64,000 nt of DNA, from NCBI RefSeq assembly GCF_021869535.1, contig NW_026262582.1:63178001-63242000 (forward strand), in the 5' to 3' direction. Below the pieces are notes generated by a model. The model was not told where the DNA came from. It did not search any database and saw nothing but the letters and a program-made list of their open reading frames with translations. How positions within the stretch are numbered: position 1 is the first letter of the stretch; the number at the start of each line of letters is the position of its first letter. This document shows positions 34,227 to 37,575 of the stretch, one piece after another. This DNA comes from Mytilus californianus. Its lineage: Eukaryota. The position numbers were made by a program, and so were the translations under genes.

Positions 34227-34421
34227 GGGGTCTCGGTGGACGAGTGGTCTAAGTAGTTACGAGTCCAATCTTAATTGACTAGGATTGTCAGTTTTCCTAT
34301 CGAAGGTCAGTGGTTTTCTCCGGGCACTCCGGCTTCCTCCACCAATATTAACTGGCCGCCACGAAATAGCCCAAAAGCGGTGCTTAAAAGTGGCGTTGAA
34401 ACACCAAAAATCAAATCAATC
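34227..34421 (+). mobile_element. tRNA-derived SINE (V-domain-like core), internally deleted, with 12-bp TSD
   Basis: A-box-like head GGGGTCTCGGTGGACGAGTGGTCTAAG, core GGTTTTCTCCGGGCACTCCGGCTTCCTCCAC, (AAATC)n tail; AACAATCCACAA at 34215-34226 and 34422-34433. Confidence 0.85.
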
Positions 34422-34528: not shown

Positions 34529-34668
34529 TTATATATATATATATATATTTATATAATAAGTACGTCTGAAGGAATGACGACTCTACCACAGATTTTATCC
34601 ATCGGATCACCAGTGATGGTGATACAAGGCTGAAAACACATCCTGTATATATATATATAAATATATAC
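34529..34668. repeat. Two (TA)n tracts (34529-34552, 34646-34668) enclosing a about 90-bp non-TA segment
   Basis: Read directly; a third (TA)n lies at 37409-37434. Confidence 0.85.
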
Positions 34669-35016
34669 AAGTCTAAATTGAAAACAACGTTCAAACCTAT
34701 GATTGCGTAGGATAAAAACCGCAATTTTTATACGTGTGCATGCAAAACAAATTTCTTGGTAGAGTGGTCTAAATACAGCACAAACAACATTTTCCAAAAG
34801 ACCAAAAAAGTGAAAAAGTATATTTTAACAAAACGCATATGACTAGCAGGTCGAACAACGGATGTTCTTAAACCCTGCTGACTGCCATGGCGATTGCCAA
34901 ATAAACGGATTACCAGATGTAAAAAATGGATCTTAATTATTAATTTAATACCAAACAGAAAACAATAAACTTACGGAAAAGATGGTATACCGCAAACATG
35001 AGGTGCAAAAATTTGT

Positions 35017-35060
35017 ACACCATATCTGGATTTCGACAATTAATGTCTCTTCAGTGATGT
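35017..35060 (-). ncRNA. Type I hammerhead ribozyme, unit 1 (helix III variant AUCCAGAU)
   Basis: Minus RNA: ACAUCA-CUGAAGA-GACAUUAAUUGUC-GAA-AUCCAGAU-A-UGGUGU. Core intact; the helix III palindrome has a central mismatch. Confidence 0.8.
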
Positions 35061-35553
35061 TAGGAATCGAAACGGTATTTGGAAAGCCATATAATTTACC
35101 TCAATTTTGGATTGACTCTTGAATTTTGAAGAGTCGAAATAAGATGAACGGATCATATAAACCCGAAGGCAAATATAATACAAGCCCAAACGAAAAAATA
35201 TAAACATGTCTAAATTGAAAACAACGTTCAAACCTATGATTGCGTTGGATAAAAACCGCAATTTTTATACGTGTGCATGCAAAACAAATTTCTTGGTAGA
35301 GTGGTCTAAATACAGCACAAACAACATTTTCCAAAAGACCAAAAAAGTGAAAAAGTATATTTTAACAAAACGCATTTGACTAGCAGGTCGAACAACGGAT
35401 GTTCTTAAACCCTGCTGACTGCCATGGCGATTGCCAAATAAACGGATTACCAGATGTAAAAAATGGATCTTAATTATTAATTTAATACCAAACAGAAAAC
35501 AATAAACTTGCGGAAAAGATGGTATACCGCAAACATGAGGTGCAAAAATTTGT

Positions 35554-35597
35554 ACACCATATCCGGATTTCGACAATTAATGTCTCTTCAGTGATGT
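35554..35597 (-). ncRNA. Type I hammerhead ribozyme, unit 2 (intact)
   Basis: ACAUCA-CUGAAGA-GACA(UUAAU)UGUC-GAA-AUCCGGAU-A/UGGUGU: 6-bp helix I, 4-bp helix II, perfect 8-nt palindromic helix III, AUA cleavage triplet. Confidence 0.9.
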
Positions 35598-36090
35598 TAG
35601 GAATCGAAACGGTATTTGGAAGGCCATATAATTTACCTCAATTTGGGATTGACTCTTGAATTTTGAAGAGTCGAAATAAGATGAACGGATCATATAAACC
35701 CGAAGGCAAATATAATACAAGCCCAAACGAAAAAATATAAACAAGTCTAAATTGAAAACAACCTTCAAACCTATGATTGCGTTGGATAAAAACCGCAATT
35801 TTTATACGTGTGCATGCAAAACAAATTTCTTGGTAGAGTGGTCTAAATACAGCACAAACAACATTTTCCAAAAGACCAAAAAAGTGAAAAAGTATATTTT
35901 AACAAAACGCATTTGACTAGCAGGTCGAACAACGGATGTTCTTAAACCCTGCTGACTGCTATGGCGATTGCCAAATAAACGGATTACCAGATGTAAAAAA
36001 TGGATCTTAATTATTAATTTAATACCAAACAGAAAACAATAAACTTGCGGAAAAGATGGTATACCGCAAACATGAGGTGCAGAAATTTGT

Positions 36091-36134
36091 ACACCATATC
36101 CGGATTTCGACAATTAATGTCTCTTCAGTGATGT
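36091..36134 (-). ncRNA. Type I hammerhead ribozyme, unit 3 (intact)
   Basis: Identical to the unit 2 motif. Confidence 0.9.
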
Positions 36135-36627
36135 TAGGAATCGAAACGGTATTTGGAAGGCCGTATAATTTACCTCAATTTGGGATTGACTCTTGAATTT
36201 TGAAGAGTCGAAATAAGATGAACGGATCATATAAACCCGAAGGCAAATATAATACAAGCCCAAACGAAAAAATATAAGCAAGTCTAAATTGAAAACAACG
36301 TTCAAACCTATGATTGCGTTGGATAAAAACCGCAATTTTTATACGTGTGCATGCAAAACAAATTTCTTGGTAGAGTGGTCTAAATACAGCACAAACAACA
36401 TTTTCCAAAAGACCAAAAAAGTGAAAAAGTATATTTTAACAAAACGCATTTGACTAGCAGGTCGAACAACGGATGTTCTTAAACCCTGCTGACTGCCATG
36501 GCGATTACCAAATAAACGGATTACCAGATGTAAAAAATGGATCTTAATTATTAATTTAATACCAAACAGAAAACAATAAACTTGCGGAAAAGATGGTATA
36601 CCGCAAACATGAGGTGCAAAAATTTGT

Positions 36628-36671
36628 ACACCATATCCGGATTTCGACAATTAATGTCTCCTCAGTGATGT
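36628..36671 (-). ncRNA. Type I hammerhead ribozyme, unit 4 (CUGAGGA)
   Basis: As unit 2, but the core reads CUGAGGA; the change is at the freely variable N7 position of CUGANGA. Confidence 0.88.
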
Positions 36672-37164
36672 TAGGAATCGAAACGGTATTTGGAAGGCCA
36701 TATAATTTACCTCAATTTGGGATTGACTCTTGAATTTTGAAGAGTCGAAATAAGATGAACGGATCATATAAACCCGAAGGCAAATATAATACAAGCCCAA
36801 ACGAAAAAATATAAACAAGTCTAAATTGAAAAGAACGTTCAAACCTATGATTGCGTTGGATAAAAACCGCAATTTTTATACATGTGCATGCAAAACTAAT
36901 TTCCTAGAAGAGTGGTCTAAATACAGCACACACAACATTTTCCAAAAGACCAAAAAAGTGAAAAAGTATATTTTAACAAAACGCATTTGACTAGCAGGTC
37001 GAACAACGGATGTTCTTAAACCCTGCTGACTGCCATGGCGATTGCCAAATAAACGGATTACCAGATGTAAAAAATGGATCTTAATTATTAATTTAATACC
37101 AAACAGAAAACAATAAACTAACGGAAAAGATGGTATACCGCAAACATGAGGTGCAAAAATTTGT

Positions 37165-37208
37165 ACACCATATCTGGATTTCGACAATTAATGTCTCTTC
37201 AGTGATGT
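37165..37208 (-). ncRNA. Type I hammerhead ribozyme, unit 5 (helix III variant AUCCAGAU)
   Basis: Same helix III variant as unit 1; core intact. Confidence 0.8.
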
Positions 37209-37440
37209 TAGGAATCGAAACGGTATTTGAAAAGCCATATAATTTACCTCAATTTGGGATTGACTCTTGAATTTTGAAGAGTCGAAATAAGATGAACGGA
37301 TCATATAAACCCGAAGGCAAATATAATACAAGCCCAAACGAAAAAATATAAACATGTCTAAATTGAAAACAACGTTCAAACCTATGATTGCGTTGGATAA
37401 AAACCGCAAATATATATATATATATATATATATAAAGCAT

Positions 37441-37575
37441 GATTGGTTGATTGGTGTTTAACGCCACTTCCAGCACTATAATGTCTTTTCGTGGTGGGCA
37501 GATTTTATTGGTGGAAGAAGCCGGAGTGCCAGGAAAGAACCACCGATTTTCGGTAAGAAAAGTGACTATCTAAGA
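37441..37575 (-). mobile_element. 3' part of a related V-type SINE
   Basis: Reverse complement contains GGTGGTTCTTTCCTGGCACTCCGGCTTCTTCCACC..AAGTGGCGTTAAACACCAATCAACCAATC. Confidence 0.75.

Follow-up and report, generated by a model that had tools for sequence, protein, structure and literature searches.

A 537-bp tandem array of Mytilus with predicted hammerheads and (TA)n insertion scars as a candidate non-LTR retrozyme

The stretch of 64,000 nucleotides of the Mytilus californianus genome analysed here (the window) includes a 537-bp tandem array, every unit of which had been proposed to encode a self-cleaving hammerhead ribozyme. This raises the question of what kind of element the array represents, and how it was copied into its present position. 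To our knowledge, retrozymes are the sole natural route from self-cleaving ribozymes to abundant animal circular RNA, and we know of no case in which their copying into DNA, or the enzyme responsible, has been shown rather than inferred. Our findings make it quite probable that the array is one insertion, in the Mytilus genome, of a non-autonomous, non-coding element of the metazoan non-LTR retrozyme kind, whose hammerhead-sense RNA would have been copied by target-primed reverse transcription at (TA)n, probably by the enzyme of a Penelope-like element (PLE).

Organization of the array and its predicted ribozymes

A repeat search of the window revealed five copies that are 97-99% identical and start exactly 537 nt apart, which bears out the tandem array of the original prediction. 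If units are numbered in the hammerhead sense, with position 1 being the base directly after the predicted cut, the array runs from unit position 299 to 364. The absence of the array from a Tandem Repeats Finder scan of the window is not evidence against it, because the longest period in that scan was 500 and thus below 537. The unit has a GC content of 34%. Its longest mechanical ORF is 103 aa, and no Pfam match was obtained for its four longest ORFs, in agreement with the earlier view that no convincing protein is encoded. The hairpin GACTCTT-N8-AAGAGTC, also described earlier, was indeed present in all five units at intervals of 537 nt. The array mixes two monomer variants in the order alpha-beta-beta-beta-alpha. 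Its features are as follows.

34646-34660, no strand: TA-rich tract directly 3' of the element, microsatellite target or tail
34659-37409, minus strand: tandem array of 5.1 units of 537 nt (repeat search and BLAST with one unit)
34661-34677, minus strand: family-wide 3' terminus TTTAGACTTGTATATAT, unit positions ~346-362, putative priming and recognition end
35017-35060, minus strand: hammerhead 5 (3'-most), helix III loop CCAG, predicted cut 35023/35022
35114-35135, minus strand: conserved hairpin, copy 5
35554-35597, minus strand: hammerhead 4, full-length RF00163 match (22.4 bits), predicted cut 35560/35559
35651-35672, minus strand: conserved hairpin, copy 4
36091-36134, minus strand: hammerhead 3, predicted cut 36097/36096
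36188-36209, minus strand: conserved hairpin, copy 3
36628-36671, minus strand: hammerhead 2, core N7 = G, predicted cut 36634/36633
36725-36746, minus strand: conserved hairpin, copy 2
37165-37208, minus strand: hammerhead 1 (5'-most), helix III loop CCAG, predicted cut 37171/37170
37262-37283, minus strand: conserved hairpin, copy 1, 7-bp stem and 8-nt loop
37410-37434, no strand: (TA)12.5 tract abutting the truncated first unit on its 5' side, second half of the microsatellite target

The 32-nt motif CTGANGA-GACATTAATTGTC-GAA-ATCCRGAT-A was found five times on the minus strand (35023-35054, 35560-35591, 36097-36128, 36634-36665 and 37171-37202; 0 expected from 100 shuffles). These positions place the predicted cuts 3' of the A at 35023, 35560, 36097, 36634 and 37171, so that both the sites and the number of complete 537-nt units that the five cuts enclose, four, are as originally predicted. 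The catalytic core (CUGANGA ... GAA-A ... U-H, where H is not G) is kept in 5 of 5 copies; within the array, the motifs vary at N7 (A or G) and in the helix III loop (CCGG or CCAG). A 6-bp helix I is combined with a 4-bp helix II and a weak 2-bp helix III that is closed by a 4-nt palindromic loop. This is the canonical metazoan architecture and not, as had been suggested, the 'minimal' PLE type, in which helix II is long and has an unpaired base at its 5' side (PMC4209133). As judged from its sequence, every unit encodes a type I hammerhead with a complete core and with helix I open.

The Rfam hammerhead model, which had been put forward as a check on this assignment, gave a less favourable result. 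In an 81-nt search, the only one that matched, RF00163 aligned end to end (model positions 1-45) with all core bases matching, but the score of 22.4 bits (E 9.6e-4) is below the curated gathering threshold of 34 bits. No hammerhead was reported when the whole window was scanned at the gathering threshold, or when 3.3 kb were scanned at E<=10. The other matches in the Rfam scans (Bacilli-1, sau-6072 and miRNA families) reflect TA tracts or hairpins that arise by chance. We also compared the motif with a genomic copy of the published self-cleaving Mg353 hammerhead (L049:582-625; PMC7229834). All 12 pairs form, and four of them carry compensatory double changes with 99% of cells paired, a result that was reached in 0 of 500 shuffles.

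The palindrome that makes up helix III is 8 nt long (AUCCGGAU) and would let two copies pair. Indeed, the predicted homodimer (-24.7 kcal/mol) is the classical double hammerhead, its helix III being 8 bp long, whereas two monomers (2 x -8.1 kcal/mol) are predicted to adopt a fold that is not a hammerhead. The same weak helix III, palindromic loop and double hammerhead are found in newt satellite 2 and axolotl retrozymes (PMC7229834, PMC4209133). These differ in their vertebrate host, their units of 330-350 nt and in that their dimer dependence was measured, whereas here it is predicted. The Mg353 ribozyme, which has a like helix III design, cleaves from a monomeric construct (PMC7229834). Published retrozymes are described as 'highly self-paired', but the 537-nt monomer is not, since its minimum free energy of -111.7 kcal/mol shows no stability excess over a shuffle mean of -105.2 kcal/mol (z = -1.14, 13 of 100 shuffles being as stable).

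For the Mg353-type retrozymes of Mytilus galloprovincialis, cleavage and circles have been demonstrated experimentally (PMC7229834). They have in common with the present units the host genus, the head-to-tail arrangement of repeats that are AT-rich, non-coding and furnished with one type I hammerhead each, the 6-bp helix I, the 4-bp helix II closed by a 5-nt loop and the 8-nt palindromic helix III. However, their units measure 350-390 nt as compared to 537 nt and their cleavage triplet is GUC as compared to AUA, and a BLAST comparison of the 537-nt unit with the Mg353-type copy region in L049 returned only short chance words. The proposal of a distinct, larger family can therefore be retained in so far as the hammerhead sequence and the units are unlike those of the published 350-390 bp Mytilus retrozymes (PMC7229834). 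Its size, on the other hand, is no longer exceptional: 537 nt lies outside the range of 150-450 bp described in 2020, but inside the range of 51-972 bp of retrozyme consensus lengths given in a 2026 preprint (10.64898/2026.07.22.740005). By sequence comparison, then, we regard the array as a member of a previously unreported family of the known retrozyme class.

A dispersed family with insertion scars

A census of the genome yielded 10,911 exact 32-nt hammerhead cores and 3,474 exact 3' termini, against 0 for the controls. For the two published ribozyme families, the corresponding number is ~4,600 motifs in a fragmented draft genome, compared to ~11,000 exact motifs here. The copies form short arrays, thousands of them, which are spread over all large contigs; 21 arrays other than that of the window span 1.2 to >12 units, and some arrays of the family are long (~25-40 units). 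Divergence amounts to 1.25% within arrays and 3.0% between arrays. Units of one array do not become less similar the farther apart they lie, and one array has three identical units. The family is large and young. That the element is dispersed is borne out by these counts and by the scars of retrotransposition described below.

The variants that have become fixed throughout an array are confined to loop 2 (UUGAU in L050, UUUAU in L031 and UAAAU in L045), and the hammerhead of a related expressed element in a second species differs only in loop 2. Within the family, the mean minor-allele frequency is 0.0125 for the hammerhead and 0.0202 for the rest of the unit. This difference is not significant, the hammerhead ranking 237 of 537 among 44-nt windows, as expected of young copies that are decaying neutrally. 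Preferential conservation of core and helices among the genomic copies, as had been anticipated, is therefore not seen within the family.

The ends of the arrays are far from random. In 28 of 37 blocks the repeat ends at unit positions 359-364 (about 362), at TTTAGACTTGTWTATAT, and is followed by (TA)n, whereas the 5' starts are scattered over unit positions 11-509, usually after (TA)n. The arrays abut (TA)n directly on both sides, from which the absence of LTRs was judged, and the flanks of 21 arrays have nothing in common except (TA)n. Tail-to-tail inverted fragments occur in L039, L048 and L050. The combination of a fixed 3' end with scattered 5' starts is the mark expected of target-primed reverse transcription into (TA)n. 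Since the priming site would lie 362 nt past the ribozyme cut, the template would have been continuous across the cut site, and we infer that it was either a circle or an uncleaved multimer.

The putative partner and the form of the template

In the Naiad clade of PLEs, insertion into (TA)n has been reported, and in the Neptune clade it has been hypothesised (PMC8557442). PLE fragments adjoin several arrays of the family (L042, L047 and L048), and the one at L042:5785-7485 carries RVT_1 and GIY-YIG domains, i.e. it is a canonical PLE with a reverse transcriptase plus GIY-YIG at the C terminus. This element ends in ...TCTAGACTT-(AT)n and a copy of it in another Mytilus assembly in ...TTTAGACTG-(AT)n. 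The terminal motif TTTAGACT plus (TA)n is therefore common to the unit and to one canonical PLE adjoining an array, and AGACTT(AT)7 was counted 892 times, as compared to 33 for the control. Partial tandems, 5' truncation, tail-to-tail inverted copies and the (TA)n insertion bias are likewise traits of PLEs (PMC8557442), although the unit has no reverse transcriptase or endonuclease ORF and no likeness to the PLE body. On these grounds, the integrating enzyme is probably that of a (TA)n-targeting PLE.

Reads from three raw RNA runs cover the unit and the unit-unit junction, with 173, 129 and 258 junction reads. These do not tell a circle from a multimer, because the junction is identical in both. 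In two stranded runs, first mates were ~17:1 on the plus strand, which implies that the RNA is mainly minus-strand and thus hammerhead-sense, as the original prediction would have it; one run showed no strand bias. In none of the runs did molecule ends pile up at 35560/35559, and reads cross this site. Cleavage in vivo is therefore a prediction only, the lack of an end excess being equally compatible with uncleaved and with religated RNA. The family accounts for 0.013-0.028% of reads but for ~0.35% of the genome, so its expression is not high in these libraries.

These observations can be accommodated in a tentative scheme. Ribozyme cleavage of multimeric transcripts, probably by the two-copy (dimeric) hammerhead, would free unit-length RNA, which a host ligase would circularise. 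The hammerhead-sense RNA would then serve as the transposition template: at a nicked (TA)n microsatellite it would undergo target-primed reverse transcription, with priming 362 nt beyond the ribozyme cut at the internal AGACUU..UAUAU site. The religated 537-nt circle, copied round and round, would be the most likely template, and an uncleaved multimeric transcript a less likely one. On the most far-reaching reading, which is conceivable but less likely than not, the 537-nt hammerhead circle is primed at an internal site by a PLE enzyme specific for (TA)n, which then copies it repeatedly, in which case the length of an array would reflect the distance that the enzyme ran and the ribozyme would serve only to make the circle.

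Several observations were counted against this scheme. An array newly made from a single circle in a single run of copying would not have the alpha-beta-beta-beta-alpha order. The motif scores below the Rfam threshold, the hammerhead is not preferentially conserved within the family, no cleavage ends were seen, the share of reads is low, and the monomer shows no excess folding. Moreover, only the terminal ~8 nt are common to the unit and the PLE, and the unit is not derived from a pseudo-LTR (pLTR) of the L042 element.

Some of these observations would fit a linear template: a source array and its (UA)n tail would be transcribed by read-through into an uncleaved multimer, and neither the hammerhead nor a circle would have a role in its copying. 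A fixed 3' end and a TA tail are equally expected if priming starts in a transcribed (UA)n tail, and two monomer variants would be found together if the source array was heterogeneous; reads that span the cut site and a monomer of unremarkable structure point in the same direction. However, arrays with identical units exist, and most of the RNA of the related Mytilus retrozyme is circular in vivo (PMC7229834). Furthermore, the core and helices persist in ~11,000 copies as well as in a second species, and loop 2 alone shows changes that have been propagated; an irrelevant ribozyme would hardly account for this. We consider a linear template somewhat unlikely, and prefer a circular one. As for the retrozyme identity claimed at the outset, the type I hammerhead, the non-coding and AT-rich tandem repeat and the scars all speak for it, while self-cleavage and the production of circular RNA stay candidate properties.

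Alternative origins of the array and implications

A more radical alternative is that the array is a satellite-like repeat that grows at the DNA level, through unequal crossing-over or extrachromosomal circular DNA, and that the hammerhead is an inert relic. The arrays of ~25-40 units, the unexceptional conservation of the hammerhead within the family and its sub-threshold Rfam score would fit with this idea. What argues against it is that short arrays, dispersed by the thousand, end at a common 3' terminus, are truncated to a variable extent at the 5' end and sit in a microsatellite target, that similarity does not fall off along an array, that the hammerhead differs from an experimentally active one by compensatory changes and that the RNA is strand-biased. 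Growth at the DNA level therefore appears improbable to us.

The PLE fragments beside arrays could also mean that the unit is itself a pLTR, or an untranslated part, of an autonomous PLE, and that the arrays are PLE remnants. This would account for the terminal motif, the (TA)n target and the tail-to-tail inverted copies that the unit and PLEs have in common, and Xenopus retrozymes do resemble pLTRs (10.64898/2026.07.22.740005). However, no ORF lies inside or between the units of arrays that reach dozens of units. When the unit was compared by BLAST (word size 7) with two PLE copies of one family including their untranslated regions, only the terminal ~8 nt matched, apart from short chance words. 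The PLE untranslated regions do carry hammerhead-like motifs, but these differ in type, an unpaired base preceding their helix II, and the core is canonical in only 1 of 3 copies of the motif; an Rfam scan of L042:7630-7900 revealed no hammerhead in the PLE untranslated region and no twister in a short inverted element (X). A PLE remnant is thus a highly improbable explanation.

Least probable of all, with hardly any weight in our judgement, is that the units are cargo of a Helitron- or Helentron-type DNA transposon inserting at A/T-rich sites, as for satellite-like arrays of oyster: bivalve Helentrons are described as bearing tandem repeats beside microsatellites (PMC7492417), and TA tracts as well as two inverted copies of a dispersed repeat lie around the array in the window, but 21 arrays have no conserved non-repeat left or right flank, arrays directly abut (TA)n with a 5' boundary anywhere in the unit, and the flanking inverted repeat is part of another dispersed family, for which a first look gave at least 1,369 candidates.

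The proposed partnership with a PLE enzyme has parallels elsewhere. Retrozymes have been suggested to be non-autonomous partners of PLEs in a study of vertebrate non-LTR retrozymes, which gave the range of 51-972 bp and had molluscs outside its scope (10.64898/2026.07.22.740005). There, the link was made through the pLTR similarity in Xenopus, whereas here, in a mollusc, it is made through the terminal motif and the microsatellite target. SINE/LINE partnerships similarly involve a non-coding element with the 3' motif of its coding partner, a microsatellite-type tail and a fixed 3' but variable 5' end. Unlike in those partnerships, a short unit is copied here into a multimer, whose 3' end falls within the repeat unit instead of at an RNA end, and no pol III promoter was identified.

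The 537-nt family leaves the known picture of the nature of retrozymes unchanged, and roughly triples the hammerhead count attributed to Mytilus retrozymes. Its insertion scars are unusually clean, with one 3' end, a (TA)n target and a PLE-like terminal motif, so that both the partner and the form of the template, circle or multimer, are directly testable in an accessible animal. If the proposed copying of a circle by a PLE enzyme is true, these scars would represent the first sequence-level evidence on the integration of an animal retrozyme.

Sequence and predicted fold of the hammerhead array

A repeat search of the window bore out the 537-bp tandem array of the original prediction, with five copies spaced 537 nt from start to start and 97-99% identical. 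With one unit as the BLAST query, the array extended over 5.1 units of the minus strand, at 34659-37409. Tandem Repeats Finder gave no match to it because the longest period of this program is 500. The 32-nt ribozyme core, of which zero copies are expected by chance, was found five times on the minus strand, exactly at the cuts that had been proposed (35023/22, 35560/59, 36097/96, 36634/33 and 37171/70). The claimed hairpin, with a 7-bp stem and an 8-nt loop, is likewise present in all units, and the view that no convincing protein is encoded held, the longest ORF being 103 aa long and without a Pfam match. The GC content of the unit is 34%.

On the minus strand, the 5'-to-3' sequence of the motif is ACAUCA / CUGANGA / GACA-uuaau-UGUC / GAA / AUCCGGAU / A, the predicted cut, and UGGUGU. 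Helix I has 6 bp, helix II 4 bp and helix III 2 bp with a 4-nt palindromic closing loop. This matches the canonical type I design of metazoans (PMC4209133), and not the 'minimal' design of Penelope-like elements (PLEs) that had been suggested. The Rfam Hammerhead_1 model could be aligned with the motif from end to end with all core bases present, but the score of 22.4 bits is below the gathering score of 34. This match was seen only with a short search stretch, and neither the whole-window scan nor a 3.3-kb scan gave a Hammerhead_1 match. All variants fixed throughout whole arrays of the family are located in loop 2, and the hammerhead of a related expressed element from another species is unlike that of the window in loop 2 only.

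The ribozyme of Mg353, a published Mytilus galloprovincialis retrozyme for which self-cleavage was shown experimentally (PMC7229834, supplement), is identical to the 537-nt-family motif in design but different in its letters. One copy of this type was seen at another locus of the genome:

L049:582-625 (-), solitary Mg353-type hammerhead without tandem neighbours at the site

When this copy was aligned with the 537-nt-family variants, 99% of the cells paired and 4 of the 12 pairs differed on both sides, which was matched by 0 of 500 shuffles. It should be noted that the four compensatory changes represent one comparison only, because all of them come from the single L049 sequence. In thermodynamic predictions, two copies of the unit motif fold into a classical double hammerhead of -24.7 kcal/mol with an 8-bp helix III, whereas the single-copy fold reaches only -2.1 kcal/mol, which makes it plausible that the hammerhead would act as a dimer. 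However, the Mg353 ribozyme of equal design cleaves from a monomeric construct (PMC7229834).

Insertion anatomy of the 537-nt family

The exact core occurs 10,911 times in the 1.65-Gb genome, nearly equally on both strands and with a spacing of ~530-545 nt. For the analysis of boundaries, 20 further arrays were taken from the genome and positions were counted from the base after the cut. Among the 37 arrays and fragments that were not truncated by a locus edge, 28 end at unit positions 359-364, in TTTAGACTTGT(T/A)TATAT followed by (TA)n. On the 5' side, 35 different start positions from 11 to 509 were counted, in most cases with (TA)n in front of them; the window array spans unit position 299 to 364 with (TA)n tracts on either side. 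The exact 27-nt terminus plus tail was found 3,474 times genome-wide (control, 0), and the ratio of cores to termini corresponds to about three ribozymes for each insertion. Boundaries of this kind, with the 3' end fixed, the 5' end truncated at variable points and a microsatellite as the target, are typical of target-primed reverse transcription, by which the hammerhead-sense strand would have been copied.

A cleaved linear monomer is ruled out as the template, because the fixed 3' end is 362 nt beyond the cut. Instead, the template would have run unbroken across the cut site, either as a religated circle or as an uncleaved multimer. In the register 299 to 298, the monomers of the window array represent two variants in the order alpha-beta-beta-beta-alpha, with three to four variant sites common to both outer (alpha) monomers, among them the CCAG loop in helix III. 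This counts against a single circle as the template. Divergence amounts to 1.25% among units of one array and 3.0% between arrays, similarity is not higher between neighbours than between remote units, and one array holds three identical units. These findings fit arrays whose units all arose together in a single event, and not growth by unequal crossing-over.

Two other types of repeat adjoin the arrays:

Window 37440-37570 and 34283-34366, inverted pair of a separate dispersed repeat bracketing the array (84 nt, 81% complementary)
L049:2447-3627, unrelated ~441-nt tandem repeat in three copies (two 99% alike), adjoining a 537-nt array

The bracketing repeat is ~131 nt long, with at least 1,369 first-look candidates genome-wide at 83-88% identity, and one of its ends abuts the (TA)n tract. 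This repeat is possibly SINE- or MITE-like, and its TA-rich end may have supplied the target of the array.

RNA from the unit

The unit is present in 20 public runs from 12 studies under three species labels. With one unit as reference and the cut site placed mid-way, 1,342, 1,552 and 2,351 reads mapped to it in three raw RNA runs of ~8-10 million records each. Unit-to-unit junctions were covered by 173, 129 and 258 of the reads, a junction that circles and multimers share. The share of reads (0.013-0.028%) is below the ~0.35% share of the family in the genome. No excess of molecule ends was detectable at the cut site in the RNA runs, and reads span the site.

The proposed minus-strand transcription agreed with two stranded runs, in which first mates were ~17 times more frequent on the plus than on the minus strand (565 versus 32 and 858 versus 52 at the ribozyme block), but the third run was unbiased. 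In most stranded libraries a first mate on the plus strand stands for minus-strand RNA, and on that basis hammerhead-sense RNA predominates in the two runs. Since insertions occur genome-wide in both orientations, the excess of one strand speaks for an internal promoter or for sense RNA being selectively stable. In RNA reads of a second species, similarity of 90% or more is confined to blocks of the unit, the ribozyme block 35544-35633 being among them.

Penelope-like elements and known retrozymes

Inspection of other loci bearing or adjoining arrays of the family revealed the following features:

L042:5785-7485 (+), 5'-truncated canonical PLE with RVT_1 and C-terminal GIY-YIG; 3' untranslated region to ~7770, with an inverted copy of this region behind it, tail to tail
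L043:9152-9196 (+), minimal-PLE-type hammerhead with intact core CUGAUGA, an unpaired A, then a 5-bp helix II, and helix III AUAUUU
L043:3028-3091 (-), near-threshold SECIS_1 match (32.7 bits, cut-off 35 bits), ~1 kb from an array
L042:5709-5790, L042:7805-7890 and just 3' of L043:6921, ~85-nt recurrent fragment, inverted, right after (TA)n tracts

The PLE protein beside one array shares 89% identity with a protein of Mytilus edulis, which, together with the presence of the Mg353-type ribozyme, agrees with a Mytilus mussel as the host. The L042 PLE ends in ...TCTAGACTT followed by (AT)n, and a 91%-identical copy in another Mytilus assembly in ...TTTAGACTG followed by (AT)n. A second PLE fragment, at L048, has a CxxC-type zinc-finger linker before GIY-YIG and ends in ...AGAGACTTT and (AT)n, with a unit fragment directly adjoining. 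Genome-wide, AGACTT with an immediate (AT)7 occurs 892 times versus 33 times for the reversed control. An insertion bias towards (TA)n is reported for the Naiad PLEs, a group with many copies in Mytilus (Craig et al., PMC8557442), and the zinc-finger linker of Neptune PLEs has been proposed to give them a microsatellite bias (cited in PMC8557442). Descent of the unit from the terminal repeat (pLTR) of the L042- and L048-type PLEs was rejected, as no similarity was found past the last ~8 nt. As judged from the sequences, the link consists in a common terminal motif and target, from which we infer a partnership of the family with a PLE.

A hammerhead-like motif was also noted in the 3' untranslated region of the L042 PLE. 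It belongs to the minimal PLE type, helix II being preceded by an unpaired A, and of the three copies seen only one has a canonical core (CUGACGA). The tail-to-tail ~85-nt fragment contains a TCTAGA-centred hairpin and has a 3' end ...TATAGACTTCT followed by (AT)n. It gave no Rfam match to a ribozyme and possibly represents the tail of a further PLE family. A selenoprotein-coding Naiad element may be the source of the SECIS_1 candidate.

Most of the tested features of metazoan non-LTR retrozymes (PMC7229834) were found in the 537-nt family, which by analogy would work like them. The published mussel retrozymes of 350-390 bp have units without similarity to the 537-nt unit and a different ribozyme sequence, and the family is distinct from them at the sequence level. 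The idea of a larger, distinct family thus stands as regards distinctness, and 537 nt exceeds the 150-450 bp of the 2020 description (PMC7229834), but the size falls within the 51-972 bp of a 2026 preprint (10.64898/2026.07.22.740005), where the case has already been made for retrozymes as non-autonomous partners of PLEs. Our present findings add the 537-nt family, its size, and a boundary rule with a PLE-like terminal motif in a mollusc.
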